A DNA stretch of 64,000 nucleotides from Setoptus koraiensis (GCA_048013815.1 CM106586.1:18538001-18602000), one strand, 5' to 3'. Counted from the first letter of the stretch, positions 28,881-64,000 are shown. Notes: generated by a model not told the origin, from the letters alone. Numbers and translations: made by a program.

Positions 28881-30945
28881 ATGGACTCCATCAAATTTAA
28901 TCTCTTTTGGGTGACAATTTTCATTGTCACATACATCAACGGTTCAGCAAATTTCCTGCAGCCTCATGATGAAGAAGAAGGAATAACACATGTGAACCAG
29001 TCAGAAATTTGTCATGCGAAGAAGTGTCGACTGCTCGATGGAATAAGGACTCGCTTGAAGTTATATTTAAAAAATAGACAAAAAAAACCGAGCTATCTTA
29101 TATGGGTAGTAGTCCACAATCTTTCTGGTTTCTATTTTATATTTGATTATATGGTGTGCGGTTTTGGAAGTGAAAGTCTCATCGCTGAATTAAAAGAGAA
29201 ATATATTATCGTCGACATGTTTGCTACGTATGGCTTCTCTCGGATGTTCAACAAAGTTGCGGCTATACTTTTCTTAGAAATCTTCACGTTTCGTATTAAG
29301 AACATAGTCGCTAACATGAGCAGACAGACTGGATGCCAAAGATGCGATCTGCGAGTGACATATATGAATTGTCTCGTGTTAAATCTCAGAGCTTGGATGC
29401 ATATTCTTGGTCTCAGAGATAGAGTTCAATGCAAAGATAGGGTGCATTGTGAGAGAATGATTCACTGCAAGATCCAATGTCAAGCTGCCGCTTCGTCAGA
29501 TAAAAAGTATCGAGGTGAGTCTCTTCGTGCAAACTATAATAAACGTGGTCACTTTGATGTTCGTGGTTCTGAATTATCAGAAAATTCCGCACAAGCGAAC
29601 CACAAACAAGAGGCGTTCGATTTTGACAATGACTTTCGAGAAATCAATTACCAGCTAAAATTCCCAAAACAACTCTTGGTAAACGGGTCCACCCATATAA
29701 TGGATTTGGCTTCGCTGAGGTTCTTATCTTATTTGTTTTTATTGGGAGGGACGTTCTTAATACTGGTCGGAATGGCAGCTGTAAGATATTCTTTATTGAT
29801 GGAAATCCACAATTGTGGCGGAACGATGAAATTATTCATCAAGCTGCGTCTCTTCACCTATTCGCTCACAATCATTGCTCTCAATGACGTAATTTGGCAA
29901 TTTAATGAGATTACACTCTTTATTCTTCACTGTGCAGTCTGTTACAGCAAGGCCAGGCATACACTCGACCAGACCGTACAGTTAATTGAAATGTATCGTT
30001 CCAGCGGAAAACATACTTCAAGCTTTTGCATAGCGAACATAGGAAAGTACAGCATAAAGGAAAACCATCATCTATCCGAGAGAATTGACAGACTCGTCAG
30101 AATGATCATAGAGCTACGCTCAGACGTTGATCATCTAAAGCGACGTTTCACAATCGATTTAAACTTGGAACTTCTTTTCAAAATGCCATGTGTTATATTA
30201 ACTTTGTCAACGCTCGTCGGCACGCCAAACCTTAGCGTTACGGAAACTCGACTACTTTATCTTCTTTTGCAAGGATATTGGCTTCCCATATTTGTCCTCA
30301 GTTTATCAGCTGCTCTTATTCATTCTAGGGTAATCGTCATGACACGAGTCGGCGAGAGGAAAGTTCTCACCAGTGCTCACCCCATCCCATTCTCTCACAT
30401 CTGCCCCTTTTTTCTCAAATCTCATCACTAGTTGAACTACAACTTTGAAATAGGAATGTAACATTCCTCAAAAAATAACCTGTAGATTAGACTGGAGCGA
30501 GACAACAGCAAATGTTGGCCTCATTCTGCCCAATTTTCTTAACTCCCAATAGCCATTACTAATAACGGACGCTTCATCCATATTATATATCCATTCAATC
30601 ATGTTTCCAGTTCAAGGCTATCTATTATGCACTGCAGAATCTCATGACCTACAATTGCTTTATGACTAGTTGGAACCAGCAGCGATTGTCTTCGATAGAA
30701 GAGGATCTCAATGATATCAGGAATGTGGCACTTTTTATCTTCGAAACAGACCCGCTGACTCTTGTTAACTTGCTAATGGTTAGTATATCATGAGAGATTA
30801 AGAACCTCAAAATGTGAATCCTGGAGTTTATATTCTACGATATTCTCGTCATATTGTTTCATATCGCATAATTTCTTTTTATATTCTATAGCTAATTGGA
30901 TGGATCGCATCGGGCATAACATTGTTGCTGAAATATGCATTGTGA
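28881..30945 (+). CDS. Divergent gustatory-receptor-like 7TM protein, copy 1 (556 aa)
   Basis: join(28881..30329,30611..30778,30892..30945); phase-0 GT-AG introns; ends LIGWIASGITLLLKYAL*. Confidence 0.82.
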
Positions 30946-32592
30946 AATTCCTGTTTTTCTGTCTAGCATTCTAGCTGGCGAATGGTGAGGAGTAAAAGCT
31001 GATTTGAATTTTGTCCATGTATTCGATACCTTGATATTCACGCTTGTAATCTGATTGTTCTTTGTTGGGTGCATTGGTGTTTGAGACGTCTTTTTGAGCA
31101 ATATTAGAAATATTGAAAGTTTCGTCCATTATCAGCATATGTGAATCTCAGAGTCGAGTCATCTTGCTGAGAGATGAGAATATATTGAACTAGACTCGAA
31201 TATTCATCCATCTTCTTCTATTGCCAATACGAAAGACTCAATGATGTACTTTCCAAGCTATCCTCTGGACTCATAGGCTCTCTCATCAAAGCTAAAGCGT
31301 TTCGTCTAGCTCCAGTGGCAGTTTGCGGCTGGAGTGATTCCACCGCCGGAGTTCAAGACGCCTAGATGGGATCGGAACGCATGACTAGTGGCGATTTGGG
31401 CAGTCTTACATGATGTCTTTTTATTCGTATAAGATCGTATTTGTACAATTTGAAATATGGATAGATGATTGAAGAGTGGTGTTTTCGGATAAATTGAAAA
31501 TCCCTTATCTTAAATTAGAAAGACACCGCAAAAACCATTTTGTCAATATTGTGAACCGTAACACGAGAGGAACTTCTTACAAATATCACAGTGCAATATA
31601 TATCTGAGCCTCTTAGATGCATTGTGGTATTATGGTCTAGATGAGATATTGCTCGATCAGGTTTGTCTGAAAAGAACGAAAAACGTGGATATACTGAAAA
31701 TAGGCAGCCAGTAATAAGTTCTGTTTTGCGTGCATAGGAAGCATAAGCGAGATGAGTTTTTTAGGTATCGAAGGATCATAAATTACTGCTTATATTGTTG
31801 TGCTTGTTGAGAAGTAACCGAGATTGATGATAACATCTTCAAGATATACACTGTAGATCATTCAAAGCAATTGTGCGGTCAAAAATGATTTTGCCCCGGC
31901 GCAAATTCTGCTCTCAAGTTCAAGTCAGAATGGCGTGAACGGCGAAAATTGAAAGTGTGGCTGATTTTGACTATTGATGTGCAAATTCAGTTCAAAATGG
32001 TTGAAAATTTATAATTATGCACTGGACTTTCCAGATGGGTCGGTGACAATTCTTCGAACGACGATTCTTCGAATAGAAGATTTGAGTTTCAAAAATGCAT
32101 ACTTATCTGTTACAATGCTATTAACCTGATCAACACTGTGCAATACCCTACCCAAAAATACCCAAAATACCCAAATTAGGCGTGGTCGCTGTTCGATGGA
32201 ACAACCCAAATTTTCACTGATTGTCACGAGAATGTGATCTCACTCGATCGGTTGATCATTCGTTGTAGATCAATAACATCACATCCTTGTGACAATAAAT
32301 TGAAAGCTACGAAGGGCAGCAAACTAGTTCACTTCTTGATCATTGTGATCACTACTGACCAGATCATTTCATTTTGAACATTTGATATCGATTGATCATT
32401 TCCGGTAATATGTAACAACGGTAAACATGAAAGAATTTGAATAAGGGTAACATGAACAACAGTTTCCATCTAACAAATAAAGACAAAAGAGCCTCATTTT
32501 CTAGTTCAGAGAATAGTATTTTCTTTTTTCAAGCATGCTCAACTTATTTTATTATATTTCTTAGATCGTTGCAGTCATAACCAGTATGCTAT

Positions 32593-33141
32593 TTAGTTAG
32601 CTTGAACAGCACCCTTTTTATGATTGACCAATTCAGGTAGGTCGCCGCGTTTCAATTCTTTTCTAAACTGCTGTCGCTTCAGTATTTCGGAATCGATTTG
32701 TTGTTGTAGTGAGGTTACATCGCCCTCCACTTCACTAGCGTTAATTCTATTGATTAAGGTCATCCTCTTGTTAACGATTTTTATGTATTTGAAATCCGGT
32801 TTATAGTCACCAATATCTTGCCACTCTACTGGCTCGACTTTGATTATTTTATTCTTTATGCAGGCAAGCATTCCTTCTTCTGCAGCCAACACATCCAGAT
32901 AGTACTCTCTGTCGGTAAAATAATCAACGTTAGTTGGTTCTTTCTTTAATAGTTTCTGGACTCTTCGCAACTCCTCATTGTAAGATCTGATGTTACGCAT
33001 ATGTTCGATAACATAACTTTGCTCTTCCTTTTCTAAACCCTCAAACTCGGGATCAAGTTTACCTGCAAAGGCCGGAAAGACCGAAACACAAACCAGCATC
33101 GACGAACACAGTATAATCGCTAATAAGTTAATTTTTTGCAT
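32593..33141 (-). CDS. Small secreted helical protein, orphan (182 aa)
   Basis: ATG start, signal peptide MQKINLLAIILCSSMLVCVSVFPAFAG, charged helical-looking body, single exon; a decayed paralog lies next to it. Confidence 0.75.
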   Translation of the reverse strand: MQKINLLAIILCSSMLVCVSVFPAFAGKLDPEFEGLEKEEQSYVIEHMRNIRSYNEELRRVQKLLKKEPTNVDYFTDREYYLDVLAAEEGMLACIKNKIIKVEPVEWQDIGDYKPDFKYIKIVNKRMTLINRINASEVEGDVTSLQQQIDSEILKRQQFRKELKRGDLPELVNHKKGAVQAN

Positions 33142-34553: not shown

Positions 34554-36625
34554 ATGGATTCGATCAAAATCAATATATTTAGGCATTTAATTTTCATCGT
34601 CATATTATTTAACGGTTCAGCAAATTTTATCCGGTCTCATGAGGACGAAGATGAAGCAACACATGTAAATCAGTCGGAATTTTGTTACGAACCGAATTCG
34701 AAGAGGCGAACACTGCTTGATCGATGGAAGTCACGTGTGGCCTTATTTCTGAGAAATAAACAACGAAAACCGACCTATCTCATATGGGTAGTACTCGACC
34801 TTTTTTTTGGACTCTACATTATATTCGATACTATGGTGCGTGGTTTCGGCAGCGAAAGTCTCATCGCTGCATTAGAAGAAAAATGTTTAATTGTCGACAT
34901 GTTTGCTCCTTACAGCCTCGGTTACAACATAATGATGAACAAAGTGGTGGCGATACTTTTTATTGAAGTCTACTTGTTTCGTATGAGGAACATCATCGCA
35001 AACATGAGGATGAACAGCGAACGCCAACTGGGCGATTTGGAAGTGACATACATGAACTGTCTCGAATTGACCCCCAGAGCCTGGATGTATATTCTAGGTC
35101 TAACGGATACAGTTCAAAGTAGAGATGAGGCGTATAATAAGAGAATCATGCACAGCACTATGCATTGCCAGCCTCGGTGTCAAGCTGCCCCATCGTTAGA
35201 TAAAGAGTATCGAGATCGGTTTCTGGACCAGAACAATGACCAATATGGCCATGCTGACGTCAGTGGTTGTGAATTAGCTAATATGGATATCAAGAAATGC
35301 TCGGCTCAGACGAATTGCAAAAAAAAGACGTTTGATTTTGACGATGACTTTCAAGAGATCAATTATCAGCTGAAATTTCCGGAGCAACTTTTAGTAAACG
35401 GGTCTCCCCATATAATGGGTTTGATGTCGATGAGGTTTGCGGCTTATATGCTTCTAATAATCGGCCCTGTGCTAATAATTCTCGCCATAGCTGTTACACA
35501 AGCTTCTTTATCGATTGAGTTTCATTACTGTGGCGATTCGATGTTATTGTTCGCCAAGCAGCGCCTTTTACCATATTTGTCGTTAGCTATCGTTTGCCTC
35601 AACATACTATTTCATCTCGAAGAGAATGCACTCTTTATTCTTCACTGTGGAATCTGCTACAGCAAGGCCAAACATACGCTAGATTTGGTCTCAAGCTTAA
35701 TTGAACTGCATCGATCCAAAGGAAAACGTGCCCAGAAATTCCGCTTACCGCACTTAAGCAAGAGCAACTATCAAGCTACTCGCGACTACGAGATCAGCAA
35801 AGGGGGGTGCACACTCCAGAATCACTATCGATCGATATTCGCCAATGCAATCATCGATAAAGATGCCATGGATTCGATAAGGATATCCGAAGAAATAGAT
35901 AGACTCGTCGCGATGATTATGGAGCTACGCTCAGACTTTGATCGTCTGAGGCGACGTTCTACATTTGACATAAATTTGGACCTTTGTTTCAAGATGCCAT
36001 GTGTTATATTACCTCTGACAAGGCTCATATCGGCAGATCTTGGCACCCTGGAAGCTCAAATACTTTGTATTGTGCAAGGATATCTGGCTCCCATTCTAGT
36101 CATTAGTTATTTTTCCGCCCTTGTCCATTCTAAGGTGATTATCATGATACAAACATTTTCACCTACAGTATCTCGCTATTCTCCTTATCACCCGATGACC
36201 ACAACACATTTCGGCCGCAATTTCGAACTAAGGTCAGATTTTTCATCCACATTTTACATCCATCCCATTATATTTCCAGTTCAGGGCCATCTATCATGCC
36301 TTACAGAATCTCATGACCTATCATTCCCTCATGACTAGCTGGAACCTTCAGCGATTGTCGTACATTGCAGAGGATCTAGGTGATATCCGCAATGTGGCGC
36401 TCTTTATCTTCACTGTAAACCCGGTGACACTTGGTAACTTACCTATGGTTAGTATATCGTGAAAGAGGAAGAATCTTACTCTGTGAATCCTTCAATGTGA
36501 ATTCTCTGTAGTCATATCTATTTACTTTATATTGCAAAAACATATTCTATTCCAATATATGTATTCTATAGCTAATCGGCTGGACCGCATCAGGCATAAT
36601 ATTGTTGTTACAATATGCAGTTTAA
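34554..36625 (+). CDS. GR-like 7TM protein, copy 2 (600 aa)
   Basis: join(34554..36134,36280..36447,36572..36625); ends LIGWTASGIILLLQYAV*. Confidence 0.85.
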
Positions 36626-37040: not shown

Positions 37041-37505
37041 TATTGTTAAATTGTGCCTTTTTTAGTATTTGTAGATATAGACATCATAAGCCTTTCAGGT
37101 TCGGGCACGGGTTAATTGCAATGAATCCGGGAGATGACTTCCAACAAATCAATTATCAGCCAAATGTTCTATCACTTGAACTTAAACAGGTCCCCTCATA
37201 TTGTTGATTTGTAGGCGCTGAGATTAGTGTTCTATCTATTTCTTGTGGGAGGTTTGCTGATACTATTGCCCGCAGCAGCAGCTATAAAACTCTCTTCTTC
37301 GATTGAGTATTACAATTGTGCTAGTTCGTTGATACTATTGTCAAACGACGTCTTCAATTGGTCATTGTCAATGACAATTTGTCATCGCTATTACTGTTTA
37401 AATTCACAGAAGTCACTCATGCTCTGCACTGCGCAATCTGCTGCAGCAAAGCTGAGCTTACAATCGATTTGACCTCACAGTTAATTGAACTGCATCCGTC
37501 CAGTG
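37041..37505 (+). pseudogene. Degenerate internal fragment of a GR-like gene
   Basis: Remnants of DDFQQINYQ, GPLI.., TM3 (LFLVGGLLILL..AAAIK.SSSIEY) and LHCAICCSKA..IDLTSQLIELH, with stops and indels. Confidence 0.8.
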
Positions 37506-38351: not shown

Positions 38352-40568
38352 ATGGATTCGATCAAATTCAATATATTTAGGCATTTTATCTCAGTTCTTA
38401 TACTCTGCAACGAGTCAGCAAATTTTGCTTCGTCCTATAATGAAGGAGAAGAAGAAGTAACACATAAGAACCAGCCGAAAATTTGCCACAAGCTGAGTTG
38501 GAATAAGAGAGCACCACTCGATGGAATGAGAGCTCGCGTAATCTTGTTCCTTGAAAATAGGCAACAAAAACCGACCTATCTTATTTGGGTAATCCTCGAC
38601 TATCTGTGTAGGCTCTATTTTATATTCAACATGATGGTGTATGGTTTTGGCAGCAAAAGTCTTATCGCTAAATTAGAGGATAAACATTTGATCGTTGACG
38701 TGTATACCTCTTATGGCTTCGCTCGGGTGGTCAACAAAATTTTGGCCATACTTTTTATAGAGGCCTACTTATTACGTACGAAGAACATCGCGGCAAACAT
38801 GAGGATGGAAACCGGACGCCAACGTGGTGATTTGGCAATGACATACATGAACTGTCTCGAATTGACCCCCAGAGCCTGGATGTATGTTCTAGGTCTAACG
38901 GATGCAGTTCAAAGTAGAGATAAGGCACACCTTGAGAGGATGACCCACAGCACTCAGCAATGCAAGCGTCAGTGTCAAGATGCCGCATCCTCAGAAAAAG
39001 AGCATCGAGGTCAATTTCTTCGTGCATATTATAATCGACGTGGCCATACTGCTTTCATCGTCTCTGGATTGTCGGATACGCAGCGAGCGAACTACAAGAA
39101 AAAATTCAATTTCGACGATGACTTCCGAGAAATCAATTATCAGCTAAAGTTTCCAGAGCATCTTCTTCAAAATGGGTCCCCCCATATAATGGATTTAGTA
39201 TCACTGAGAATATTGTCTTATATGACCGCAACAGGAGTGTTGTTTTTATTATTCTGCGCGATAGTAATTATAAGAAGTTTTTTATTGATGGAGTCGAACA
39301 ACTATGGCAATTCGATCTCATTATTCATGAAGCAGCGGTTTATTCCTTATTTGTTCATACTCATCTCTTCCATAATCGTACTGTTTCAATTTATAGAGCA
39401 CAGCCTCTTTATTCTTCACAGTACAGTCTGTTATTGCAAAGCTAAGCAGACGCTCGATTTTTCACTACAGTTGGTTGAACTGTATCGGTCCAACAGAAAT
39501 CGGACCTCGATAGCAAACTTAATAAGGCATAGCACAAAAGGAAACTCTAAAAATATTCAAGTTAATGAGATCAGCAAAGAGGAGCCCACTGCCACAAATC
39601 ATTGCCGATTGGTCGATTCAATTATCGACAAAGAAACAAATACAATATGGATCGATTTATCCAAAGAAATAGACAGGCTCTTCAGTATGATTGTAGAGCT
39701 ACGCTCGGACATCGACCATCTGAAGCGACGTTTTACACTCGATTTAAACTTGGAACTTCTTTTCAAGATACCATGTGTTATATTAACTCTGTCAACGCTA
39801 ATTGCGAGGGCAGACCTGAGCGTTTTGGAGGTTCAAATACTTTGTGTTCTTTTGCAAGGATATTGGGTTCCCATCTTACTCCTCAGTCTTTATGCTGCTT
39901 GTGTACATTCAAAGGTGATCATCCTGATACGCGTCATTTGTTGATGAGTAATTAGCAGAAAGCTAGTTCTTACGCTCCCGGATCATATTCATTCACGAAC
40001 CCCACATAATCTCATTTGCTTCACGCTTTTTTCGTGGTCTCATCGCCAGTTGACGACTGAGCAAGAACATAAGGGGGCCCGAGAAACAACCTGTAGATTA
40101 AACTAGAGCGAGATGAGAGCGAATGGGGGGCTTATGCTGTTCACTCTTCTAACCTCCCGATAACAATAAATAATATCGGACTCTTCATCCCATTCATATA
40201 TCCATTTATATATCTATTCAATGATATTTCCAGTTCAAGGCTATCTATCATGCCCTGCAGAATCTCATGGCCTACCATTCCCTTATGAATTCTTGGAACC
40301 GTCAACGATTGTTGTCCATAGAAGAGGATCTTAATGATGTCAAAAATGTGGCGATTTTTATTTTCGGAACAAACCCGCTGACTTTTGGTAACGTGCCAAT
40401 GGTTAGTATACCATGGAAGAGAATGAATCTCTAGCAGTGAATCCTTGAATTTTTAACCTTCAATATTCACGTCATCCTATTTCGTATTGCATCATTTAAT
40501 TGTATTTTCTATAGCTAATTGGATGGATGGCATCAGGCATAATATTGTTGTTACAGTATGCAGTGTGA
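38352..40568 (+). CDS. GR-like 7TM protein, copy 3 (594 aa)
   Basis: join(38352..39914,40234..40401,40515..40568); ends LIGWMASGIILLLQYAV*. Confidence 0.85.
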
Positions 40569-41101: not shown

Positions 41102-41596
41102 ACGATTCTGACATAGACCCCCTGAGGTTCTGAAGGCATATTCTTATGTGCCCACTGAAATTAGTAGAATGTATCGAGTAAAGAATAACTCGACCAGAGA
41201 CAGTTAAAGAGTGGAGAAGTAAATTTACGAAATTGGTCGGAAATGAAAAGTAGAAGTGAAGAGATAGAACAGGCTTACACTCAAAAATGTCTGCACCATT
41301 TTCTTGATCGTTCGTTTTATGTGATCAACCACAATATATTTAACCCTCGCTATTTTAATTGTCATGGTCCATTGATCCTCATGAGGTTTTCGAGGTATGC
41401 TCCTCTGTGTCTGATTCAAGCGATATAATATGTCGGGCAAAGTGTAACCGAAATGAAGACAGTCGAACAACTGGAGGTAGAAATTCACAAAGCTAATGAA
41501 AACAGAGTGACGAGAAAAGTTCAAACGTTATTGAAATTTGAAAATTCGCATCATTTTCTTGGTCGTTCATATTGTGTGGAAGAGGATAGTATTGAG

Positions 41597-43858
41597 ATGG
41601 ATACGATCAAATTCAACATATATCGGCTGGGAATTTCGGTCATCACATACATCAACGGTTCAGCAAATGTTATGCGGTTCGACAATGAAGAAGAAGGAGC
41701 AGCACAACTAAACCAGTTGGGTATTCTTCACGAGTTGAAGGCGAAGAAGGGCTCACTGCTCGATAAAATTAAGGCTCGCGTGGTCTTATTTCTGGCAAAT
41801 AGACAAAAAGAACCGAGCTACCTTGTATGGATAGTGCTCGACTCCCTCTGTGGACTCTATATTCTATACAATATGAGCGTTTACGGCTTTGGCAGCAAAG
41901 GTCTCATCGCGAAATTAGAAGAGCAACACCTGACCCTCAATATGATCGCACCGTATAAGGCCGCTAGAATGCTCAACAGAGTTGGTGCCATACTTATTAC
42001 AGAAACATACGTTTTTCGAATGAAGAACATCGCAGTGAACATGAGGACAGAGACTGGGCGCCAACACTTTGATCAGGAATTGACGTACTTACACAATATT
42101 GTGTTAACTCCCAGAGCTTGGATGTTCATCGTGGGTCTCACAAATAGAGTTCGAAGCAAAGACACTGCATATCACGAGAGAATCACTGGCAGCACTCAAC
42201 AATGCAAGCTTCAGTGTCAAGCTGCCTCATTGTCAGATAGAGAGTATCCAAGTCGATCTCTCAGTGCAAATCATACTAAACGTAGTGACACCGATGCCGG
42301 GGGTTCTAAATTATCTGAATTGGCCCCGAAATATTCGGCACAGGCGAGTCACAAAAGAAAAGCGTTCAATTTCGACGATGACTTTCGAGAGATCGATTAT
42401 CAGCTAAAATTTCCGAGGCAACTTCTGGTAAATGGGTCTCCCCATATCATGGATTTGGAGACACTGAGGTTTGGTACTCATCTTTATTTGTCATGCATTA
42501 TCGGGATAGCAGTGTTTGGCACGGCAGCTATAAGAGCTTCTCTGTTGATTGAGTTTCACTACTGTGGCAATTCGACGTTGGTATTCGTCAAGCAGCGTCT
42601 TGTTGCGTATATTTTTACGGTTATCGCTTGCGCACACGTAATGTTCCATTTTGTAGACGTTTGTGTCTCTAGCACAGAGTGTGCAATCTGCTACAGTAAG
42701 GCCAAGCGGGTGCTAGACTTGGCCTCTCAATTAATTGAACTGTATCGGCGCAACCGAAAACGTATTTCGAACTTCCGCCTACCGAACTCAGGAAAGTGCG
42801 ACACGAAGGGAGAGCGCCAAATCATCCGAGAGAATCGGAACGACAAACACGAGGCCGTCATCCGAAATCATTGTCGATTGGTCGAAACGATTGTCCATAA
42901 CGAGGAAACAAATCCAATATGCAGTGATCTATCAGGAGAAATAGACAGACTCGTCGCGATGATCATGGAGATACGCTCGGACCTAGACCAACTGAAGCGA
43001 CGTTATACACTTGACATAAACATGGAACTTTTTTTCAAGATGCCATGTGTTATAATAACTCTATCAGCACTCATTGCGACGCCAGATATGAGCAACAAGG
43101 AGGCTCAAATACTTTTTCTTATTTTGCAAGGATATTTGGTTCCCGCCATTTACCTATGCATGTTTGCCGCTCTTGTTCATTCTAAGGTGATCATCATGCT
43201 ATAGATTATCTGTTTACCTTTTATTATTTTAATCCTCTCTTATATGACCCAGCGATTAGTGTAATGTTATCACCGTTACTCACTTCCCTCATTTAACCCC
43301 AGATGCTGTCTTGAATCTTTTTTGTTTCTCTAGTCTCACTGCAAGTCGATTTATAACTTTCTTCAGACAGTAATGAAAGATTCTACGAAAGCTAACTTGT
43401 TGCTCGAGCTGGTGTGAGATGTGAGCTAATGTGAGGACGTCTGGTATTGTGTCGACCCGTCTATGTTATCGCTCATCACATAACTAACAGATATCCCATC
43501 TTTATTTTACACCCATCGATCACGTTTCCAGTTCGAAGCCATCTATTTTGCCCTACAGAATCTCATGACCTATAATTCTCTCATGGCTACCTGGGATTTT
43601 CAACGATTGTCGTCGATAGAAGACGATCTAACTGATATCGAAAATGTTGCGCTCTTTATCTTCACTGTTAACCCAGTGACTTTTGGTAATCTGCCGATGG
43701 TTAGTATGTTACTACGGACAAAAAATCTCGAACTGTGACTTCTAGAATGTGTATTCTTCTATATTTACGTCTTGCCGTTTCAAACTGACCAATATATTCT
43801 ATAGCTGGCTGGATGGATCGCATCGGGTATAGCATTGTTGTTGCAATATGCAGTGTGA
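41597..43858 (+). CDS. GR-like 7TM protein, copy 4 (603 aa)
   Basis: join(41597..43186,43532..43699,43805..43858); ends LAGWIASGIALLLQYAV*. Confidence 0.85.
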
Positions 43859-44160
43859 AATTTCGATCATTCTATCCAACATGCTAAATGGATGGGTCGA
43901 AGCATACTAAGAATATAAATTCTATTGAATATCGTGCGGTCTTTCGCATGCACGATGTGAGAGACCGTCAATACTTTCATGACAAGTTACGACAATGTAA
44001 GGCATGAGCGATTCCAAACAAATTTCATATGATGGTAAGCGGGCTCAATATACAAGAAGTATTTTTGTCCTCAATAAGGTGCTTTCTAATGGGATAGAAA
44101 CGAGAAGCACACATAATATGGTAATATTGCCGAGAGATGGCCACCAATAATGATTTTCAT

Positions 44161-48572: not shown

Positions 48573-50846
48573 ATGGATTCGATCAAATTCAATATATTTC
48601 AGTATTTTATTTCGATTGTCACTTTTTGCAACGGTTCGATTAATATTGAGCAGTTCTACGATGAAGAAGGAAGAGCAACAAATGTGAACCCGTCGGAAAT
48701 GCAGCACGAGACGAGTTCGAGGAAGCCACCATCGTTCCAAGGAGTGAGGTCTCTCGTTGCATTATTTCTTAGAAATAGGCAACGAGAATCGAGCTATCTT
48801 GTGTGGATGATATTTGATTTTTTGTATGGTCTGTACCTTATATTCAATACAACGGTGTACGGTTTTGGAAGCTCAAGTCTTATAGCTAAATTAGGAGAGA
48901 AGTACTTAATCGTTGACATGTATGCTCCTTATGGGCTTGCGCTTTCGCGAATGTTCAGCAGAGTTGTGGCAATACTGCTCACAGAGATCTACATATTTCG
49001 TATAAGGAACATCATAGTAAACTTGAGGATAGAGACTGGACGCCAACACTGTGATCGGAAGTGGACGTACATAAGCTTCCTCGAATTAACACCCAGAGCC
49101 TGGATTTATATTTTAGGTCTCACAGATAGAGTTCAATGCGAAGATAAGACGCATCTTAGAAAAATCACTAGCATCACTGGGCAGTGCAAGATTGAATGTC
49201 GAGATGTCGCCTCGTCGGATAGGGAGTCTAGAACCCAATTATTTGGTGTAAATTGTAATCAGCATCGCCAATTTGATGTCGATAGATCCTCATTATCTGA
49301 TATGGCCCCGGAAGATTCGGCACAGGCGAGTCGCAAAAAAAAGGCGTTTGATTTCGACGATGACTTTCGAGAAATCAATTATCAGTTGAAATTTCCAAAT
49401 CAACTCCTGGCAAACGGTTCGCCCCATATACTGGATATGGCGTCGTTGAGGTTGATGTCGTATCTGAATTTAGGAATAAGGCTGCTCTTATTATTGAGTA
49501 TAATAATAGCTTTATGGACCACTTTATTGGTAGAGTTCAATAAATGTGGCGATTCGATCTTCTTATTCATGAGGCATCGTTTTTTGCCTTATACGTTCGT
49601 GTTGAGCGTTTCGATACTCATACTGTTCCAACTTACAGAGAGTGGCCTCTTGATTCTCGAATGTGTTGTCTGCTATAACAAGGCAAAGCGTATTCTCGAT
49701 TTAACCTTACAGTTAATTAAACTTTATTGGTCCAACAGAAAACGTTCACCGAGCTACTGCATACTGAACACAAGGGAGAGCAAAACGAAAAGAAACTATC
49801 AAACTAACCGATACAATGAGATTAGCAACGAAGAGCTCCCTGCCAAGAATCATTGCCGATTGGTGGATTCAATTATTGATAAAGATGTAACGAATACGAT
49901 ATGGAGCGATTTATCTAAAGAAATAGACAGACTCGTCGCGATGATTATGGAGCTACGCTCAGACTTTAACCATCTAAAGCGACGTTTCACACTTGACATA
50001 AACTTGGAACTTCTTTTCAAGATGCCATGTGTTATATTAACTCTGACAACGCTCATCCAAACGCCAGACCTGACCGTTATGGAAATTCGGCTGATTTATC
50101 TTTTTCTGCAAGGATATTGGGTTCCCATCTTATTCCTCAGTTTTTCAGCATCTCTTGTCCATTCTAAGGTAATCACTGTTGTACGAGCTATTTGTTAAGA
50201 AGTGACGAGCGGAAACTTATCATCTATATCCCCACCCTCACTCCAGTCACTCACAACTCCCACATAGTCCCATATGCCTCAATTTATTTCGCATTCACTT
50301 TTTTTCTCTGGTCTCATCACTCTCTGAACGGCAAATATTGATATGACAGGCCCAGAGAAATAACCTGTTGATTGAACTGGTGCGAGATGAGAGCGAATGT
50401 GTGCTGGCAAGATATTCGGCTTATGTTCCTCGCCACCCTTTCCCCTGTTTCCTCATAACTAATGTCGAGCACTTCCTACAAATTATATATCCATTCATAT
50501 ATCTATTCAATCATATTTCCAGTTCAAGGCGATCTATCACGCCCTACAGAATCTTATGACCTGTAGTTCCCTTATGACTAGTTGGAACCAGCAGCGATTA
50601 ACTTCCATAGGAGACGATCTCAATGATATGGAAAATGTGGCGCTCTTCGTCTTCAAGACAAGCCCGCTAACTTTTGGTAACTTGCCAATGGTGAGTATAG
50701 CATGAAAGAGGAAACTTACTATGTGAAATTTTGAATTTGTATAGATTCTTAGACGTAAATGTCACCTTGTTCTATCCCAACAATAAATTCTATAGCTGTT
50801 TGGATGGATCGCATCAGGCATAATATTGTTGCTGCAATATGTTTGA
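48573..50846 (+). CDS. GR-like 7TM protein, copy 6 (604 aa)
   Basis: join(48573..50168,50523..50690,50796..50846); ends LFGWIASGIILLLQYV*. Confidence 0.85.
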
Positions 50847-51849: not shown

Positions 51850-54119
51850 ATGGATACGATCAAATTCAATATATTTCTGATCCCACTTATAATTATCAAA
51901 TACATCAACGGTTCTGCAAATTATGTGCGGCCGAAAGATGAAGAAGAAAAAGCAGCACTTGTAAAGATTCGTCACAAGTTGAAAGCGGAGAAAAAAACAC
52001 TGCTTGATGGATTGAAGGCGCGCGTTGCCTTATATCTGGCAAATAAACAACGAAAACCGAGCTATCTTATATGGATTGTGCTCTACTTCCTTTTTGGACT
52101 CTATTTTCTATATAATGGGACTGTCTTCGGCTTTGGCAGCGAAAGTCTCATCGCTGAATTAGAAAAGAAATACCTGACCGTCAACATTCTCGCACCGTAT
52201 AACGTGAAGGTCTCTCAAATGCTTTATAGAGTGGCTATCATACTCATTATAGAAGTCTACGTGTTTCGGATAATGAACATTGCAGAAAACATGAGGATAG
52301 AGACTAGGCGCCAACACTTCGACCAGGAATTCACGTACATGTACAATCTGGAATTGACTCCCCGAGCTTGGATCTATATTTTAGGTCTCACAGATAGAGT
52401 TAAATGCAAAGATAATGCTCATGTTAGACGAATCAATAGCAAAAATCGGCAGTGCACGATTCAGTGTCAAGCTGTCTCATGGTCAGATAGAGAGCATCCG
52501 GGCCGATATCTCAGTGCAAATCATAATGAACGTAGTCATATCGATGCCCGTGGTTCTCAATTATCCGATGTGGCCCCGAAAGATCCGGTACAGGCGAGTC
52601 GCAAAAGAAAAGCGTTCAATTTTGACGATGACTTTCGAGAAATCGATTATCAGCTAAAATTTCAAAGGCGATCTCAATCACATGGGTCCCCTCATATAAT
52701 GGATTTGGGGTCACTGAGGGTGCTGGCGTTCCTTGCTCTTGCATTATACATTGTTTTCCCATTTATCGCCATAGCAAATACACGAAATATTGCAGCGATG
52801 GAGTTTCACTACTGTGGCGATTCGGTTTTACTATTCGTCAAGCAGCGTCTCTTCCCTTTTTTGTGCATGATCAGCGCTTGCGGACTTATAATGTTTCAAT
52901 TTACAGAGATGGCCTTGTTTTGTGTTCATAGTATGGCCTGCTACGGCAAGGCTAAGCTTACGCTTAATTTGATCTCGCAGATAATTGAACTGTGTCGGTT
53001 CAACGGAAAACGCATTTCGAGCATCTGCTTAAACAATCTAAGAAGCAACAGCACGAACGGAAACTATGAAATTACCCGAGACAATGAGACCAGCAAAGAA
53101 AAGGTTGCCGTACAGAATAACTGCCGATTGGTCGATACAATCATTGAAAAGGATGAAGCAACGTCGATTTGGAGTCATATATCAGAAGAAATAGACAAAC
53201 TCGTCGCGATGATCATGGAGATACGCTCGGACATTGCCCAAATAAGGCGACGTTATACACTTGACATAAACATGGAACTTTTTTTCAAGATGCCATGTGT
53301 CATACTAACTCTATCAACACTTATTACGACGGAAGACCTGAGCGATTTGGAAGCTCGAATAATTTATTTTATTTTGCAAGGATACTTGATTCCTATCTTT
53401 TTCCTAAGCTTTTTTGCTGCCCTTATCTATTCTAAGGTGATCAACATGATATAGATTATTTGTTTACTGTTAATAATTTCGACCCCCTCTTCTATAACCT
53501 AGCGAGCAATGGAATGTTATCAGCGTTGCTCAACTTCTTTCATGTCACCCCAGATGCTGAACGCTATTTCGCATCCTTCTCGTTTTCTCTAGTCTCACTC
53601 CAAGTCGACTTATAGCTTTCCTCGGACAGTAATGAAAGATCCTACGAAAGTTAACTTGTTGCTCGAGCTGGTGTGAGATGTGAGCTAATGTGAGGGTGTG
53701 AGGACGTCCGGTATCGTGTATACCCAGTTCTCTTATCGCTCATCACATAACTAATATCATCCATATTTTACATCCACCGATCATGTTTCCAGTTCAAGGC
53801 CATCTATCATGCCCTACAGAATCTCATGACCTATAATTCTTTAATGGCTACCAGGGATTTTCAGCGATTGTCGTCGATAGAAGATGATCTCCATGATATA
53901 AAAAATGTTGCGCTTTTTATCTTCACTGTGAATCCGATGACTTTTGGTAATCTGCCGATGGTTAGTATGTTATGATGGAGGAGAAATCTCAGACTGTTCC
54001 TTCTAGGATGTTCATTCTTCTATATTTACGTCTCATCGTTCCAAATTGACCAATACATTCGATAGCTGGTTGGATGGATCGCATCGGGTATAACATTGTT
54101 GTTGCAATATGCACAATGA
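51850..54119 (+). CDS. GR-like 7TM protein, copy 7 (602 aa)
   Basis: join(51850..53436,53793..53960,54066..54119); ends LVGWIASGITLLLQYAQ*. Confidence 0.85.
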
Positions 54120-54129
54120 GAGGCACACA

Positions 54130-54603
54130 TAACATGGCCATCAATAACAAGTTTTGTCGTCCATGCATGGGGAACAGCAAAGCTAAGCCTTTTGTTAACG
54201 CTTGTTTTTCTCTCCAGTTGATTGAACTGCACAGGTCCATTAGCCAACCTATTCCGAACTGATGCTTACCGAACATAGGAAAGAGCAACACGAACGGAAA
54301 CTACCGAACTCTCAGAGAAAACGAGATCAGCAAACAGGAGCCCACCGTTCAGAATCACTTTTGATTGGTCGATACGTTCATCGACAAAAATAGATCAACG
54401 TCGACCTTCAGTGATCTATCCGAAGAAATAGCCAGATTACGGATGATCAGGGAGCTACGCGCTGACATTGATCATCTAAACGGACTTTTTACACTCGATT
54501 TAAACTTGGAACTTTCTTCCAAGATGCCATGTGTTATATTTACTCTGACAATTAACTCTGGATCGCTTCGGCTATACTATAGGTGTTATATTATGCAGTG
54601 TGA
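54130..54603 (+). pseudogene. Internally deleted GR-like pseudogene
   Basis: A decayed motif A is joined to the 3' third of exon 1 (SKAK..QLIELH.. NEISKQEPTVQNH.. DLSEEIARL.MIRELR.DIDHL..FTLDLNLELSSKMPCVI). This is fused directly to an exon-3 remnant (GGATCGCTTCGG...TATGCAGTGTGA). Confidence 0.85.
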
Positions 54604-55035: not shown

Positions 55036-55506
55036 TTATTTGTGCGACACCATTTTGTCGAAATTGTCGAGAATCATTTTTGACATCGTCGATTGTACAG
55101 CGGTATAGAATCCAATTAAACGCTCATGATGCAAAATCTTTGTCCTGAATCGTTCGATCTCTTCTTTATGACTGTCTTTGCCATCGAGTTCTAGAAAGTA
55201 TATTCTGTCATAGCAGGTTCGTTGTTGCATCCTCATTTGTTTGATAACTTCTCTAGCATCGTCCATTTCCTGGTTCCGAGCAATATCTTTGTACATATGC
55301 ACGTATTCGATTGCCTCATTTGCCGGTTTGGCCATTAGTTTTTCATCATCCCAAAGATTCTTCGCCGAAATTTCCTCCCTCATTTCATCCAAGCCCTTCT
55401 GGACAAATTCCTCGAAAGCGTATGGCTCCCGCTTCTTTCGGGCACTAACAACCTCCCTAATGAAAATTGCGCAAAATATCAACAATATTAATTTGCATGC
55501 CGCCAT
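55036..55506 (-). CDS. Small secreted helical protein, orphan (156 aa from the ATG at 55506)
   Basis: Signal peptide MAACKLILLIFCAIFIREVVSA, immediately followed by a basic RKKR motif; charged helical-looking body; single exon. Confidence 0.72.
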   Translation of the reverse strand: MAACKLILLIFCAIFIREVVSARKKREPYAFEEFVQKGLDEMREEISAKNLWDDEKLMAKPANEAIEYVHMYKDIARNQEMDDAREVIKQMRMQQRTCYDRIYFLELDGKDSHKEEIERFRTKILHHERLIGFYTAVQSTMSKMILDNFDKMVSHK

Positions 55507-56215
55507 TCTTTCTTTTATCTTGGATCGCAATAGATATCTGTAACTCTCGAGCACTCAGAGTTTTCACTACAATCTCTGATTATTTTTCCAATTACCAATT
55601 ATTATCAAACAGCAATCCTTTGATGCTTCTTAGATCTATTTTTATGCTGGAATTCAGTTGCCCACAATCATGCGTTCTATTTATGTTAAAACCGAGATGT
55701 TTCCAGACACTGGCAAATGTCGCCTTGTTTAGAATAGATTTTATTCCAAAATATTATCCAATGCCATCGCATGAGACTGTCTGGGACGGTTGTGACGTCT
55801 ACACAAGCGACAAACTTATGTAGTCTAACACACTCTCCGCTGCGGGCACCCTTGATGAATATATATTCTCTTCCCATCATCAAGACTGCCTACCAAGTCT
55901 CACGATAGGTCTTACCTTGATACATGCGAATGGAATCGAATGGAAAAGTGGAGCCAACAAAATAAAAAATTATCTCATAAATTTCTCTCTTCTGTCGAAG
56001 AAAGAATTGATTGTTTCAATCTTTTTTCTTCACAGATTTTAGAAAAGAGCTGCTGCAATGATTCCAGAAAATCCTGAATTAATCATGTTTCGGTCCTCGC
56101 CGTTCTATCATCAGTGGAGCGCAGGGTCATCTTACTGACAATTGTGAGCGATGAGAATATGATGGACTGTAATTGAACTCCAACGGTAGCAACACCCGAG
56201 CAACTAACAATCTTC

Positions 56216-57039: not shown

Positions 57040-59178
57040 ATGGATTCGTTCAAATTTAATATTTTTAGGCATTTAATTTTAATCATTAGATTAATCAACG
57101 GTTCAGCAAATTATGTGCCATCCTACTATGAAGAAGAAGGAGCATCATATGTGTACCAGCCTGAAATCCGCCACGAGCTAGATTCGAGGAAGCGGACACT
57201 GCTTGATGGAATGAAAGCTCGCGTAGCCTTATTTCTGAAGAATAGACAACTAAAACAGAGCTATCTTATATGGATAGCGTTCGACTTTCTTTGCGGACTC
57301 TACTTTATATTCGATACTATGGTGCGCGGTTTTGGAAGCAAAAATCTTATTGCTAAATTGGAAGACAAAAATTTAATCGTCGACATGTTTGCTCCTTATA
57401 ACATCTCTCGAATGATGAACAGAATAGCGGCGATACTTTTTACAGAAGTCTACGTATTCCGTATCAGGAACATTGTCGCAAATATGAGGAAGGAGACTGA
57501 ACGCCAATACTTGGGATATACATACATGAGCTGCCTCGATTTGACTCCCAGAGCGTGGATCTATATTCTGGGTCTAACAAAAAGAGTTCAAAGTAGAGAT
57601 AAGGCGCATCGTGAGAGAATTACTGCTAGCACCCAGCAATGCAAACTTCAGTGTCAAGCTGCCATGAGGCCATCGTCAGATAAAGAGTGTCGAGGTGTAT
57701 TGGATATGGTTTCGAAAGATTCGGCGAAAGCGAACTACAAACAAAATTTCAATTACCACGATGACTTCCGAGAAATCAATTATCAGCTGAAATTTCCAAA
57801 GCACCTTCTTCTGAACGGGTCCCCCCACATAATGGATTTAGCATCACTGAGATTGGTGTCCAATATGGTCGTTGAAGGAGGGCTGCTTATCTTCATTTTT
57901 GTGATAGGAATTATAAGAGCCGCCCTATTGATGGAGCTTAGCATCTGTAGCCATTCAATCTTATTATTCATGAGACAGCGTTTTTTTCATGATTTGTTTT
58001 TGGCCATCGCTTGCACGATAATAATGTTTCAATTCGCAGAGGTCACACTTTTTATTCTTCACAGTACAGTCTGTTATAGCAAAGCTAAGCGCACACTCGG
58101 TCTGACCCTGCAGTTAATTGAACTATATCGGTCCAATATAATGCACACACCTAGCTTTTGCAGACCGAACGTAAGAAAGTGCAGCACAAGAGAAAACCTT
58201 CAAACTATCAGAGAAAGCCAGATTAGCAGCGAAGTGCCGACGGTCCAGAATCATTGCCAATTGATCGAATCAATTGTCGATAAGTCTGACACAAATTCGA
58301 TATGGGATGATTTATCAAAGGAAATAGATAGACTAGTCGTGATGATTAGGGAGCTACGTTCGGACTTCAACCATTTAAAGCGACGTTTTACACTTGACAT
58401 AAACTTAGAACTTTTTTTCAAGATGCCATGTGTTACATTAACTCTGTCAACGCTCATTGCGACGCCAGACCTAAGCGTCACGGAAGTTCGAATAATTTTT
58501 TTTCTTTTGCAAGGATATCTGGTGCCCGTTGTGGTCCTCATTTATTTTTCCGCTCGTGTCCATTCTAAGGTGATCATCACGACCCATGCTCTACCCATTC
58601 CATTCTCCCGGACCTCCACCCGACCTCAAATGCCTGGCTTTCCCTCCTTTTTTACGAATGACTGAATAATACTATAACATGCCCCAAGAAATAACCTGTA
58701 GATTTAAGTGGAGCGAGATGAGAGGAAATGTGCTGTTGTGGGGACGCCCAGGCTCATGCTGCTCATTCTTCCTATCTCCCAATACTCATAACTAATACCG
58801 GATATTCCATCCACATTATATATCCATTCAATCATGTTTCCAGTTCAAGGCTATCTATCATGCCATACAGAATCTCATGGCCTATCATTCCTTTATGACT
58901 ACTTGGAACCATCAACGATTGTTGTCCATAGAAGAGGATCTTAATGATGTCAAAAATGTGGCGCTCTTCGTCTTCAATACAAACCCGCTGACTTTTGGTA
59001 AAGTGCCAATGGTTAGTATACCAAAGAGGAGGATGAATCTCTAGCAGCGAATTCTTCAATTGGTATTCTTCGAGATTCACGTCATCTTATTTCTTATTGC
59101 ATCATTTTATTGTATATTCTATAGCTAATTGGATGGATCGCATCAGGCATAATATTGTTGTTGGACTATGCAATGTGA
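57040..59178 (+). CDS. GR-like 7TM protein, copy 8 (583 aa)
   Basis: join(57040..58569,58844..59011,59125..59178); ends LIGWIASGIILLLDYAM*. Confidence 0.85.
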
Positions 59179-60197: not shown

Positions 60198-62451
60198 ATG
60201 GATTCCATCAAATTCAATATATTTCGGCATTTAATACTCATTGTCAGATTCTACAATGGTTCAGCAAATTTTGTGCGATCCTACGATGAAGAAGAAGGAG
60301 CATCATACGTGTGCCAGTCTGAAATCCATCACGAGCTAAATTCGAGCAAGCGAACATTGCTTGTTGGAATAAAAGCTCGCGTTGCCTTATTTCTGGCAAA
60401 TAGACAAAGAAAACCGAGCTACCTCATATGGATAGTGCTCGACTTTCTTTGCGGACTCTATTTTCTATATAGTGTGATTGTCTTTGGCTTTGGCAGCGAA
60501 AGTCTCATCGCTGAATTAAAAGATAAACACTTGATCATCGACCTGTTTGCCCCTTATGGCTTCGTTCGGATGGTCAACAGAGTTGGGGCCATACTTTTTA
60601 CAGAAGTATACTTATTTCGTACGAAAAGCCTCGTCGCAGACATGAGAGTGAAGACTGGACGCCAACGACGCGATCGGGAGGGAACATACATGAACTATCT
60701 CGTATTGACCCCCAGAGCCTGGATCTATATCTTGGGTCTCACGGATAAAGTTCAGTGCAAAGATAAGGCTCATCGTGGGAAAATCTTCCACAACACTCAG
60801 CAATTCAAGCTTCAGTGTCAAGCCACCTCATCGTTGGATAAAGAATATCGTGCAAGTTACAATGATGGTCATGTCGATGCAGGTGGTTCCGAATTATCGG
60901 ATACAGTTCAGAAAAATTCGGGCCAGGAGAATCGCAAGGGAAAGCCGTTCGATTTCGACGATGAATTTCGAGAAATCAACTATCAGCTGCAATTTCCGAA
61001 GCACCTTCTCGTGAACGGGACCGTCCATATAATGGATCTGATGCTGCTAAGAATGGTGTCTTATTGTGTTTTAGTAGGAGGGGTACTTATACTAGTGGTC
61101 GCAACTGCAGCTATAAGAATCTCGTTATTGATTGAGATTCATTATTGTGACGATTCCTTAACATTATTCATCAGGCAGCGCCTCTTACCTTATTTAATGT
61201 TAGCCAGCGCAGTCATTATCATAATGTTTCAATTTACCGAGATAACACTCTTCATTCTTCACTGCGCAGTCTGCTACAGCAAAGCTAAGCGTACGCTCGA
61301 TTTTTCTCTACGGTTGATTGAACTGTATCGGTCCAACAGAACACATTCACCGAGCCGCTGCATACAAAACTTAGATAGGTGCAATACAAAAGGAAACTTT
61401 CATACTGTCCGAGACGATGAGATCAGCCAAGAGGGGCCCACCGCCCATAATCGATGTCTATTGGTCGATACAATTATCGAAAAGCACGAAGAAACGTCGA
61501 TTCGGAGTGATCTATCCGAAGATATAGAGAGACTCGTCGCGATGATCAGGGAGCTACGCTTGGACTTCGACCATCTAAAGCAACGTTTTACACTCGATTT
61601 AAACTTGGAACTTTTTTCCAAGATACCATGTGTCATAATAACTCTGTCAACGATTATCGTGAGACCAGACCTGAGCGGTATGGAAATTCGATTGATTTAC
61701 CTCTTTTTGCAAGCATATTGGACGCCGATCTTATTCCTAAGTTTTTGTGCTGCTTTTGTTCATTCTAAGGTGATCAACGTGATACAAGTGATTTGTTTAC
61801 CTGCTAGTGTAACCCTAGCTTTGGTCATTGATCGAAGAGTAGGAGTTTATCACCGTTTGTCGCCCCCGCACATGATCTCGTATGCTACACGCTATGTTGC
61901 ATCCTTCTCATCCTGATTCGGCTCGCAACTCCTCCTCCTATGATGATGAAACATGCCCCGAAACGCAACTTGTGAGAGCAACTTGTGAGAGCGAGAGTAA
62001 GATGTGGCTAACTGTGATGCGGTGAGGATGTCTGGGGTTGTGCCCCTCAATTCTTTTATCACTCATTCCATAACTGATCTCAGATATTCCATCCACATTT
62101 TTCATCCATCCGACCCTATTACCAGTTCAAGGCCATTTATCGCGCCTTGCAAAATCTCATGACCTACAATTCTCTCATGACTAGCTGGGATCTTCAACGA
62201 CTGTTGTCAATAGGAGAGGATCTCGAAGATATCAAAAATGTGGCGCTTTTTATCTTCATTACTAACCCCCTGACATTTGGTGACTTGCCAATGGTAAGTA
62301 TATCATGGAAGAGGAGCAACCTCAAACTGTTAATTCTTGAATGCATAAAGATTCCCCGACGTTCACGTTATCTTCTTTGTACCAATATATTCTATAGCTG
62401 ATTGGATGGATTGTTTCGGGCATAACGTTATTGTTACAATATGCAGTGTGA
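60198..62451 (+). CDS. GR-like 7TM protein, copy 9 (597 aa)
   Basis: join(60198..61769,62126..62293,62398..62451); ends LIGWIVSGITLLLQYAV*. Confidence 0.85.
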
Positions 62452-62765: not shown

Positions 62766-62880
62766 TCGTGCGTGCATAGAGACTTTCATCGACATGTGGT
62801 TAAATGAGCCAGCAAGAGGGCGACCACAAAATGCCCAAACTAAGAGGATCATGAGGCAGAAAATTTATGGTCCGTGAAGC
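62766..62880 (+). promoter_or_regulatory. Conserved motif pair A+B upstream of copy 10
   Basis: TCGTGCGTGCATAG ... AATTTATGGTCCGTGAAGC. Confidence 0.6.
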
Positions 62881-63096
62881 ACGATTCTAATAAGTGTCTA
62901 TTTAAAGTGGTAGAATGAATCCATCACAGTATAACTAGATCAGACACAGTCCAAAAACTGGAAAAAGCAAATTTGTGGAGTTTATTAGAAATAAAAGGGA
63001 AAGAAGTGAAAATATAGATTCAAACGGACTGAAAATCAAAAATATCTGCACCAGTTTCTTGGTCGTTCACATTGTATGGAAGCGGACACTATTGGG

Positions 63097-64000
63097 ATGG
63101 ATACTATCAAATTCAACATATTTCGCATTGCAATTTCAATTGTCACATTCATCAACGGTTCAGCAAATGTTTTGCGGCCCAACAACGAAGAAGAAGGAGC
63201 AGCACAATTAAAACAGTCGGATAATCGCTACCAGTCGAAGGCGAAAAAGAGAGCGCTGGTCGATGAAATGAAGGCTCGCGTTGCCTTATATCTGGCAAAT
63301 AGACAAAGAAAAATGAGCTACCTCATATGGATGGTGCTCGACTTCATCGGAGGACTCTATATTCTATGCAATTTTATTGTTTGCGGCTTTGGTAGCGAGA
63401 GTCTCATCTCCAAATTAGAAGAGAAATACCTAACCGTCAACCCGTTCGGGCCGTATAGAGTCTCTAGAATGCTCAACAGACAAGGTGCTATACTCTTTAT
63501 AGAAGTCTACGTGCTTCGAATAATGAACATTGCAGCAAACCTGAGGAAAGAGTCTGGGCGCCAGCACTTCGATCAGGAGTTGACGTACTTGCACAGTCTT
63601 GAATTAACTCCCAGAGCTTGGATCTATATTTTGGGTCTCACAAATAAAGTTCAATGCAAAGATGATGCACATCAGGAGAGAATCATGCACAGCACTCAGC
63701 GATGCAAGCCTCAGTGTCCAAGTGCAAATCGCGACGAATGCAGTCATGTTGATGCCCGTGGTTCTGAATTATCTGAATTGCTCCCGAAAGATTCCGTACA
63801 GACGAGTCACAGAAAAAAGACGTTCGATTTCGATGATGACTTTCGAGAAATCAATTATCAGCTACAATTTCCGGAGCAACTTTTAACAAACGGGTCTCCC
63901 CATGTCTTTGATTTGATGTCGCTGAGGGTGCTGGTATTTCTATATTTATTCGCTTACCTGGTGGTAACATTGGTCGGCGTAGCAACTATACGAGCTTCTG
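63097..64000 (+). CDS. GR-like 7TM protein, copy 10 (3'-truncated by the window end; absent from the ORF track)
   Basis: Open from ATG GAT ACT ATC AAA TTC to the window edge. Carries family motifs MDTIKFN, GFGSESLI, LTPRAWIYILGLT, FDFDDDFREINYQL and NGSPH. Confidence 0.88.
   Translation, partial: MDTIKFNIFRIAISIVTFINGSANVLRPNNEEEGAAQLKQSDNRYQSKAKKRALVDEMKARVALYLANRQRKMSYLIWMVLDFIGGLYILCNFIVCGFGSESLISKLEEKYLTVNPFGPYRVSRMLNRQGAILFIEVYVLRIMNIAANLRKESGRQHFDQELTYLHSLELTPRAWIYILGLTNKVQCKDDAHQERIMHSTQRCKPQCPSANRDECSHVDARGSELSELLPKDSVQTSHRKKTFDFDDDFREINYQLQFPEQLLTNGSPHVFDLMSLRVLVFLYLFAYLVVTLVGVATIRAS

Follow-up and report, generated by a model that had tools for sequence, protein, structure and literature searches.

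We analysed a stretch of 64,000 nucleotides from Setoptus koraiensis (GCA_048013815.1 CM106586.1:18538001-18602000), hereafter the window, and observed that positions 28881-64000 of its plus strand carry a tandem array of nine complete, head-to-tail, three-exon genes (G1 to G9), together with a tenth copy truncated at the window end and two decayed fragments. We consider it likely, at a probability of about 0.7, that the array encodes subunits of very divergent channels of the gustatory receptor (GR) lineage with the 7TMIC fold, and that it represents a chemoreceptor repertoire formed by tandem duplication. We favour this reading because the gene structure, the motif at the protein end and the predicted shape of a full-length relative agree with one another. 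The same three lines of evidence support an earlier note on this DNA, which had suggested an undescribed, lineage-specific expansion of oversized 7TMIC/GR-like proteins. The predicted fold and the gene plan are of the GR type; the sequences, the size and a conserved module in the first intracellular loop (IL1) are undescribed.

The members of the array are as follows (lengths are those of the spliced proteins):
28881-30945 (+): G1, 556 aa; exons 28881-30329, 30611-30778 and 30892-30945
34554-36625 (+): G2, 600 aa; exons 34554-36134, 36280-36447 and 36572-36625
37079-37495 (+): decayed family fragment, from the IL1c motif to S4, with stops and frameshifts
38352-40568 (+): G3, 594 aa; exons 38352-39914, 40234-40401 and 40515-40568
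41597-43858 (+): G4, 603 aa; exons 41597-43186, 43532-43699 and 43805-43858; used as the numbering reference
44849-47117 (+): G5, 604 aa; exons 44849-46441, 46791-46958 and 47064-47117
48573-50846 (+): G6, 604 aa; exons 48573-50168, 50523-50690 and 50796-50846
51850-54119 (+): G7, 602 aa; exons 51850-53436, 53793-53960 and 54066-54119
about 54150-54600 (+): decayed partial duplicate just 3' of G7, with stops and frameshifts; a piece from the S4 extension to S5 joined to a stop-bearing, exon-3-like remnant
57040-59178 (+): G8, 583 aa; exons 57040-58569, 58844-59011 and 59125-59178
60198-62451 (+): G9, 597 aa; exons 60198-61769, 62126-62293 and 62398-62451
63097-64000 (+): tenth copy, open for its first 301 codons and cut by the window end inside S3

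The nine exon-1 open reading frames (ORFs) comprise 517-632 codons each, and the distance from one gene start to the next is 2.9-5.7 kb, mostly 3.2-3.8 kb. When the putative exons 2 and 3 of one copy were used in tblastn, a 168-nt piece followed by a 51-54-nt piece was found downstream of every one of the nine ORFs, in the same order. None of the nine spliced frames contains an internal stop. Both introns are phase 0, carry GT..AG ends with a pyrimidine-rich acceptor and lie near the 3' end in all nine copies; the first (145-356 nt) comes after the codons H/Y-S-K/R, and the second (104-124 nt) after ...P-M. The proteins of the array are 52-70% identical in pairwise comparison, the nearest paralog of G4 being G5 (70%). 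The earlier note had claimed at least ten copies about every 3-4 kb, products of 556-604 aa, two phase-0 introns close to the C-terminus and intact frames in nine of nine complete copies; the gene models bear out each of these, and reproduce the length range exactly.

Relatives of the family were found by an exhaustive HMMER search with a 13-sequence profile against 1.84 billion cluster representatives. This returned 24 proteins, all of them unnamed ORFs without a Pfam domain from Logan raw-read assemblies, and word-based homolog searches returned just 3, 3 and 2 proteins. The relatives that were looked up came from four runs, on contigs with intron-poor animal genes (NRF, laminin G, iGluR-type and profilin). 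We also built a local hidden Markov model (HMM) from 13 spliced full-length models, which matched the intronless relative P0024 at E 4.5e-19 (database size 1.84e9); its positions 286-597 align with P0024 residues 366-689, that is, from S3 to the end of S7. The N-terminal motifs of P0024 are colinear with those of the window family as well (a hydrophobic start with I/V-N-x-S/T, then [TS]Y..L..T...W, then P-H-x-x-D). The array proteins are thus homologous to intronless, full-length relatives. In language-model features, the nearest named clusters were 7tm_7, DUF267 and DUF3537, with values of 0.91 (exon 1 of G4) and 0.96 (P0024); all three are 7TMIC families. The contig of P0024 has a second ORF of 702 aa upstream (L004 3-2111), which may be a further family member, and the contig of P0021 (L005 13917-19452, Logan SRR33927515) has ORFs with weak Lig_chan and ANF_receptor matches, of the ionotropic glutamate-type receptor kind.

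Several comparisons support, on evolutionary grounds, the splicing of exon 1 to exons 2 and 3. The length of exon 2 is identical across the nine copies; that of exon 3 is identical in eight and a codon shorter in the ninth. Nucleotide identity among the copies is 79-82% in exons 2 and 3, 64-68% in the introns (with 9-30% gapped positions) and 48% in the 3' flanks. The genes are under purifying selection, as the check proposed in the earlier note revealed: dN/dS is 0.40 overall, 0.42 in exon 1 and 0.22 in exons 2 and 3, at a dS of about 0.75. In a related species whose proteins are 31-41% identical (Logan run SRR33593474, loci L001-L003), four of four genes have the same two intron positions with GT..AG ends. 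The distant homologs P0019, P0021, P0024, P0025 and P0027 (693-814 aa) are intronless and run continuously through the equivalents of exons 1, 2 and 3. The ORFs of P0014, P0020 and P0023, from other subfamilies, end with the residues V-S right after the aligned intron-1 site, as expected for a translated GTAAGT-type donor, which would mean that the intron-1 position is kept there (this reading is drawn from the protein ends and not from DNA). The earlier note had named a lack of splicing to exons 2 and 3 as an outcome that would tell against it; what we found instead were canonical sites in all thirteen genes (9/9 and 4/4), indel-free exons under constraint and colinear intronless homologs.

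At their 3' end, the genes carry the marks of the Gr lineage. Exon 3 consists of six codons (e.g. L-I-G-W-I-A) followed by SGhhhhhQ[YF], two residues and a stop, in all nine window copies and in the four genes of the related species, apart from the replacements at the Q[YF] end given below. The last intron therefore lies between codons, exactly six codons 5' of this motif, and the last Gr intron has the same position before TYhhhhhQF (PMC2680840, PMC5203786). A further phase-0 intron, placed after ...HSK within the S6 cytoplasmic extension, precedes the exon for S7a. The nonapeptide at the end of transmembrane helix 7 (TM7) reads SG, five hydrophobic residues, Q and Y in seven of the nine copies. 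In the related species it is SG-hhhhh-QF in three genes, and QN, with N at the aromatic position, in the fourth. The TYhhhhhQF signature is thus half kept, with Q[FY] retained. The terminal LLLQY reported in the earlier note is accordingly present in seven copies, while G1 ends in LLLKY (codon at 30934-30936) and G8 in LLLDY (59167-59169); G1 is also the shortest copy, with about 38 residues of the second intracellular loop (IL2) missing. The N-terminal and loop motifs quoted in that note occur in most copies, with one or two variant copies for each motif. Mite GR clades can lose a recognisable TM7 motif and yet keep diagnostic phase-0 introns at the C-terminus (PMC5203786). The Gr-type last intron and the Q[FY] motif point to the Gr branch rather than to PHTF/GrlHz, and we read the family as a probable, very divergent offshoot of the Gr lineage, with a detectability comparable to that of the fly Grls.

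The fold was taken from P0024, because a model of the exon-1 part of a window protein failed (see below). P0024 is the shortest intronless full-length homolog (693 aa), and it was folded by AlphaFold2 with a 31-sequence family alignment. The model had a pLDDT of 70.2, with core membrane helices at about 90, and a pTM of 0.72. When it was compared with the PDB by Foldseek, the top 21 matches were all odorant receptors (ORs), GRs or Orco, and against the Swiss-Prot part of the AlphaFold database the top 27 were all GR, OR, Orco, GUR-3, LITE-1 or EGL-47. An Atlas shape search gave TM-scores (by target) of 0.66-0.76 against 7tm_7 and 7tm_6 clusters. The model aligns with solved receptors from the N-terminal S0 helix through the C-terminal residue, and has S0 and a further seven helices, with S4-S6 extended far into the cytoplasm and S7 split into S7a and S7b. 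The model therefore shows a 7TMIC fold for this one intronless relative, and the window proteins themselves would be predicted to share it.

The helix map was carried over from the P0024 model onto the window proteins and is given here in residues of G4:
10-19: S0
about 75-98: S1
99-122: first extracellular loop, EL1
123-152: S2
153-286: IL1
287-323: S3
327 to about 385: S4 with its cytoplasmic extension
up to 441: IL2, variable
442-494: S5
495-499: third extracellular loop, EL3
500-545: S6
550-600: S7a/S7b, followed by 2-3 residues outside the membrane

Of the two introns, the first interrupts the S6 cytoplasmic extension and the second lies within S7b. The seven hydrophobic segments described in the earlier note correspond to S1-S7, and the short hydrophobic N-terminal helix S0 is additional to them. 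The excess over typical GRs, about 150-200 residues, lies mainly in the 134-residue IL1, and further in a linker of about 50 residues between S0 and S1 and in the variable IL2. Two motif blocks are conserved in IL1, TY..L.LTPRAW.YILGLTD and F.FDDDFREINYQLKFP..PH. We considered whether LTPRAW.YILGLT might be an eighth membrane helix and rejected this, as it maps to short helices of the IL1 loop in the model.

As regards topology, lysine plus arginine per residue is 0.13-0.26 on three of the five flanks assigned as cytoplasmic; the remaining two flanks have 0.04 and 0.09, and the assigned outer loops 0.02-0.09. The helices of the model superpose in order on receptors of known orientation, and the C-terminal tail is 2-3 residues long. 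The charge bias fits an intracellular N-terminus, which argues that the N-terminal hydrophobic stretch would be S0 and not a signal peptide. The alternative, in which this stretch and the conserved N-G-S mark a signal peptide and hence an inverted topology, was rejected, since the stretch aligns with an S0 that superposes on residues of about 5-20 of solved receptors. Neither a fold unrelated to 7TMIC nor a membrane topology lacking an intracellular N-terminus, both of which the earlier note had listed as speaking against its proposal, was found.

When we examined the nine paralogs segment by segment, the least conserved parts were S3 (37% identity, omega 0.60), S4 (39%, 0.58) and S6 (53%, 0.56), as well as EL2 and EL3. 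The most conserved were S5 (74%), the S6 extension (80%), S7a (69%), S7b (76%) and the IL1c motif (75%), with omega values of 0.18-0.35, of which 0.18 belongs to the IL1c motif and 0.19-0.34 to S5, the S6 extension and S7b. In solved OR and GR structures, S2-S4 and S6 enclose the ligand pocket with their outer halves, and S5-S7 make up the pore and the anchor domain. The variable S3, S4 and S6 and the constrained S5 and S7 therefore fit a channel with a diversifying ligand pocket and fixed pore and assembly surfaces. In a tree with twelve representatives of the related species, the nine copies formed one clade (99/100), within which G4, G5 and G7 make up a recent sub-cluster; this points to local tandem expansion, with birth and death.

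On this basis, and by analogy with the solved receptors, each array protein would be a subunit with an intracellular N-terminus bearing a short S0 and seven helices S1-S7, most likely assembled as a tetramer, following the pattern of solved ORs and GRs. A cation pore at the centre would be lined by the C-terminal half of S7, with SGhhhhhQ[YF] as the family version of the TYhhhhhQF gate motif, and the anchor domain would be built from the cytoplasmic extensions of S4-S7. The outer halves of S2-S4 and S6 would enclose a pocket for a small ligand, whose binding would gate the channel; tandem duplication with divergence in S3, S4 and S6 would give each copy its own ligand range, and the array a chemosensory role. 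G1 and G8, in which K and D take the place of the gate glutamine, may handle ions differently or may act only in heteromers.

A number of results weigh against the assignment to GR-type channels. In hmmscan against Pfam at E <= 1, the exon-1 proteins of G4, G6 and G8 had no match to 7tm_7 (PF08395), Trehalose_recp (PF06151) or 7tm_6, and ten relatives, including the full-length or nearly full-length P0019, P0021, P0024 and P0013, matched no family. Neither the family profile nor P0024 retrieved anything but noise from PDB sequences, and the exhaustive HMMER search described above contained no annotated GR. These Pfam, PDB and exhaustive profile searches named no family, and by sequence the array family is an orphan. 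The evidence for the fold is indirect. AlphaFold and Foldseek gave the OR/GR/Orco fold for P0024, but the model of G4 from exon 1 only (13 sequences) was poor (pLDDT 45.8, pTM 0.26), with meaningless fold matches, and the homolog from which the fold was transferred is only about 17-21% identical overall to the window proteins. The TY of the TM7 signature is replaced by SG, and the gate glutamine by K or D in the two copies mentioned. A search for sequencing runs holding the array genes found matching runs of unknown or DNA kind only, and no RNA run. Four genomic runs, compared with 41400-47200, covered introns and spacers as evenly as exons and had no GT..AG joints at the predicted introns. 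As the matched sequences were genomic contigs that lack spliced joints, splicing and expression of the array genes are putative.

It is unlikely, in our estimate, that the proteins descend from GRs and have the 7TMIC fold but serve as internal or housekeeping channels or as scaffolds, roles of the kind suggested for GrlHz or PHTF, with the IL1 module as the functional part. The 7TMIC fold does not imply chemosensation, as GrlHz and PHTF are broadly expressed (PMC9998090). The strongest family-specific conservation is indeed intracellular, in IL1 (75% identity, omega 0.18), whose motifs are common to distant homologs from at least three other runs, and no RNA run with the array genes was found. 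However, housekeeping 7TMICs are single-copy and conserved, whereas this family forms tandem arrays with 52-70% identity, pseudogene debris and species-specific clades. Its divergence, moreover, is centred on those helices that form the ligand pocket of solved ORs and GRs, which is the birth-and-death pattern of chemoreceptor families.

We regard it as very improbable that this is an unrelated multi-pass membrane family whose match to ORs and GRs is due to convergence, or to AlphaFold imposing a learned fold on a long helical protein; the orphan status and the poor exon-1 model set out above are to be read against the intron position and end motif of the Gr lineage. Still less probable is that the copies have no present function, being dying or silent duplicates or else carried along with a repeat. 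Two decayed fragments do lie within the array, no transcripts were found among the matching runs (which were of unknown or DNA kind only), and omega is fairly high, about 0.6, in several segments. However, all nine complete copies keep frames of about 600 codons and both pairs of splice sites at a dS of about 0.75, the lengths of exons 2 and 3 are invariant but for one codon in one copy, and homologs are retained in several other species. The omega of 0.40 overall and of 0.18-0.26 in the conserved modules is likewise at odds with decay.

On this reading, standard searches would probably undercount the chemoreceptors of the animal. In Aculops lycopersici, the one eriophyoid with a published genome, two GRs and no chemoreceptor expansions were reported from a search by BLAST and InterPro (PMC7738191), and the array would bear on this two-GR statement if the present animal is an eriophyoid-type plant mite. 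We put forward only tentatively, and as somewhat doubtful, that the picture of near-total GR loss would here be an artefact of sequence searching, and that a large hidden GR-derived family exists whose IL1 module of about 130 residues provides an undescribed mode of regulation or assembly. Among the papers searched, none links 7TMIC to mites, and none describes a family of this kind in Eriophyoidea. Chemoreceptor counts serve arguments on host range and on how miniaturisation shapes genomes, and such counts would be altered by GR-derived arrays of intact, selected genes that are invisible to BLAST and Pfam; the array would then also supply concrete candidates for host-plant sensing. The family widens the sequence space of 7TMICs by a large conserved intracellular insertion, a TM7 signature with SG for TY and, in two copies, K or D for the gate glutamine. 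Prokaryote-style or ab initio gene callers return exon 1 only, since the pore helix is encoded by two separate small exons, and the genes are thus easily mis-annotated as six-transmembrane orphans, as the earlier note had anticipated.

We made some further observations on the array. A block of about 70 nt directly 5' of each ATG (e.g. 41527-41596 and 44779-44848) is conserved across copies, and the sequence farther upstream is divergent; the block is possibly a shared 5' untranslated region or a core promoter. Its reading frame runs on into the coding sequence in several copies, so that ORF callers lengthen the protein by 7-50 residues. The two larger gaps of the array hold minus-strand ORFs of 182 aa (32593-33141) and 172 aa (55036-55554) with no Pfam match. 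At 42952-43145 and 46250-46443, exactly over the part coding for S5-S6, the genomic runs show a summed word depth 3- to 9-fold above that of the adjacent bins. Such a rise is what one would expect if these words recur in many more paralogs in other parts of the genome.

The remainder of the window contains other genes:
9021-10579 (-): ORFs with immunoglobulin domains (Ig_3, I-set, V-set), which are probably exons of a single cell-adhesion gene
15996-20900 (-): adjacent ORFs with Sema, PSI and TIG domains (1202 aa) and with a tyrosine-kinase domain (275 aa, E 4e-80), together resembling a single Met/Ron- or plexin-like receptor kinase interrupted by an intron
23894-28171 (+): intronless 1425-aa ORF adjoining the array on its upstream side, with a PPDK_N domain (E 3e-55) and, at the C-terminus, a PEP-utilizers mobile domain (E 3e-19), i.e. 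a bacterial-type PEP-synthase/phosphotransferase architecture in an animal genome

The Sema/PSI/TIG, kinase and immunoglobulin ORFs identify the genome as an animal one, and the window indicates that it is poor in introns. The G+C content is 52-54% in the part with the immunoglobulin ORFs, as against 37-43% in the receptor array.

When the family is compared with known systems, PHTF and GrlHz resemble it in a 7TMIC fold, predicted for the window proteins, that bears long insertions; at about 700-800 aa, the distant homologs P0019, P0021 and P0024 are of similar size. However, PHTF and GrlHz are single-copy and conserved, whereas the window family is multi-copy and fast-evolving. The published Z of PHTF to Orco is 12-13, below the value obtained here, and neither the exon-1 proteins nor the ten relatives matched the Phtf profile at E <= 1, so that this mark of the PHTF branch was absent from them.

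The Drosophila Grls (Grl36a, Grl43a, Grl62a-c and others; PMC9998090) comprise 10 genes of normal GR length. The window family differs in being oversized, in forming arrays of ten or more genes, in having its own conserved intracellular module and in belonging to another arthropod lineage; no sequence relation between the two was seen. TuGR-A and TuGR-B of Tetranychus urticae (PMC5203786) are likewise divergent, mite-lineage GR clades with a mostly unrecognisable TYhhhhhQF, and were defined by diagnostic, short, phase-0 introns at the C-terminus and by large tandem expansions. Unlike the window family, which was not reached by sequence search from the GR side, the TuGRs can be found by BLAST from known GRs and are of normal length.

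Arthropod GRs in general (solved: BmGr9, DmGr43a and DmGr64a) have about 380-480 aa, as against 556-604 aa here. The window family differs from them in its lack of HMM-level similarity, in the change of TY to SG, and in its motif-bearing IL1 of 134 residues, long S0-S1 linker and long IL2. What it would share with them is the predicted order S0-S7, a short C-terminus, predicted to be extracellular, that ends two residues past the TM7 motif, in most copies the hhhhhQ[FY] part of that motif, tandem arrays with pseudogene debris, and a variability that is greatest in the presumed pocket helices and least in those of the pore and anchor.

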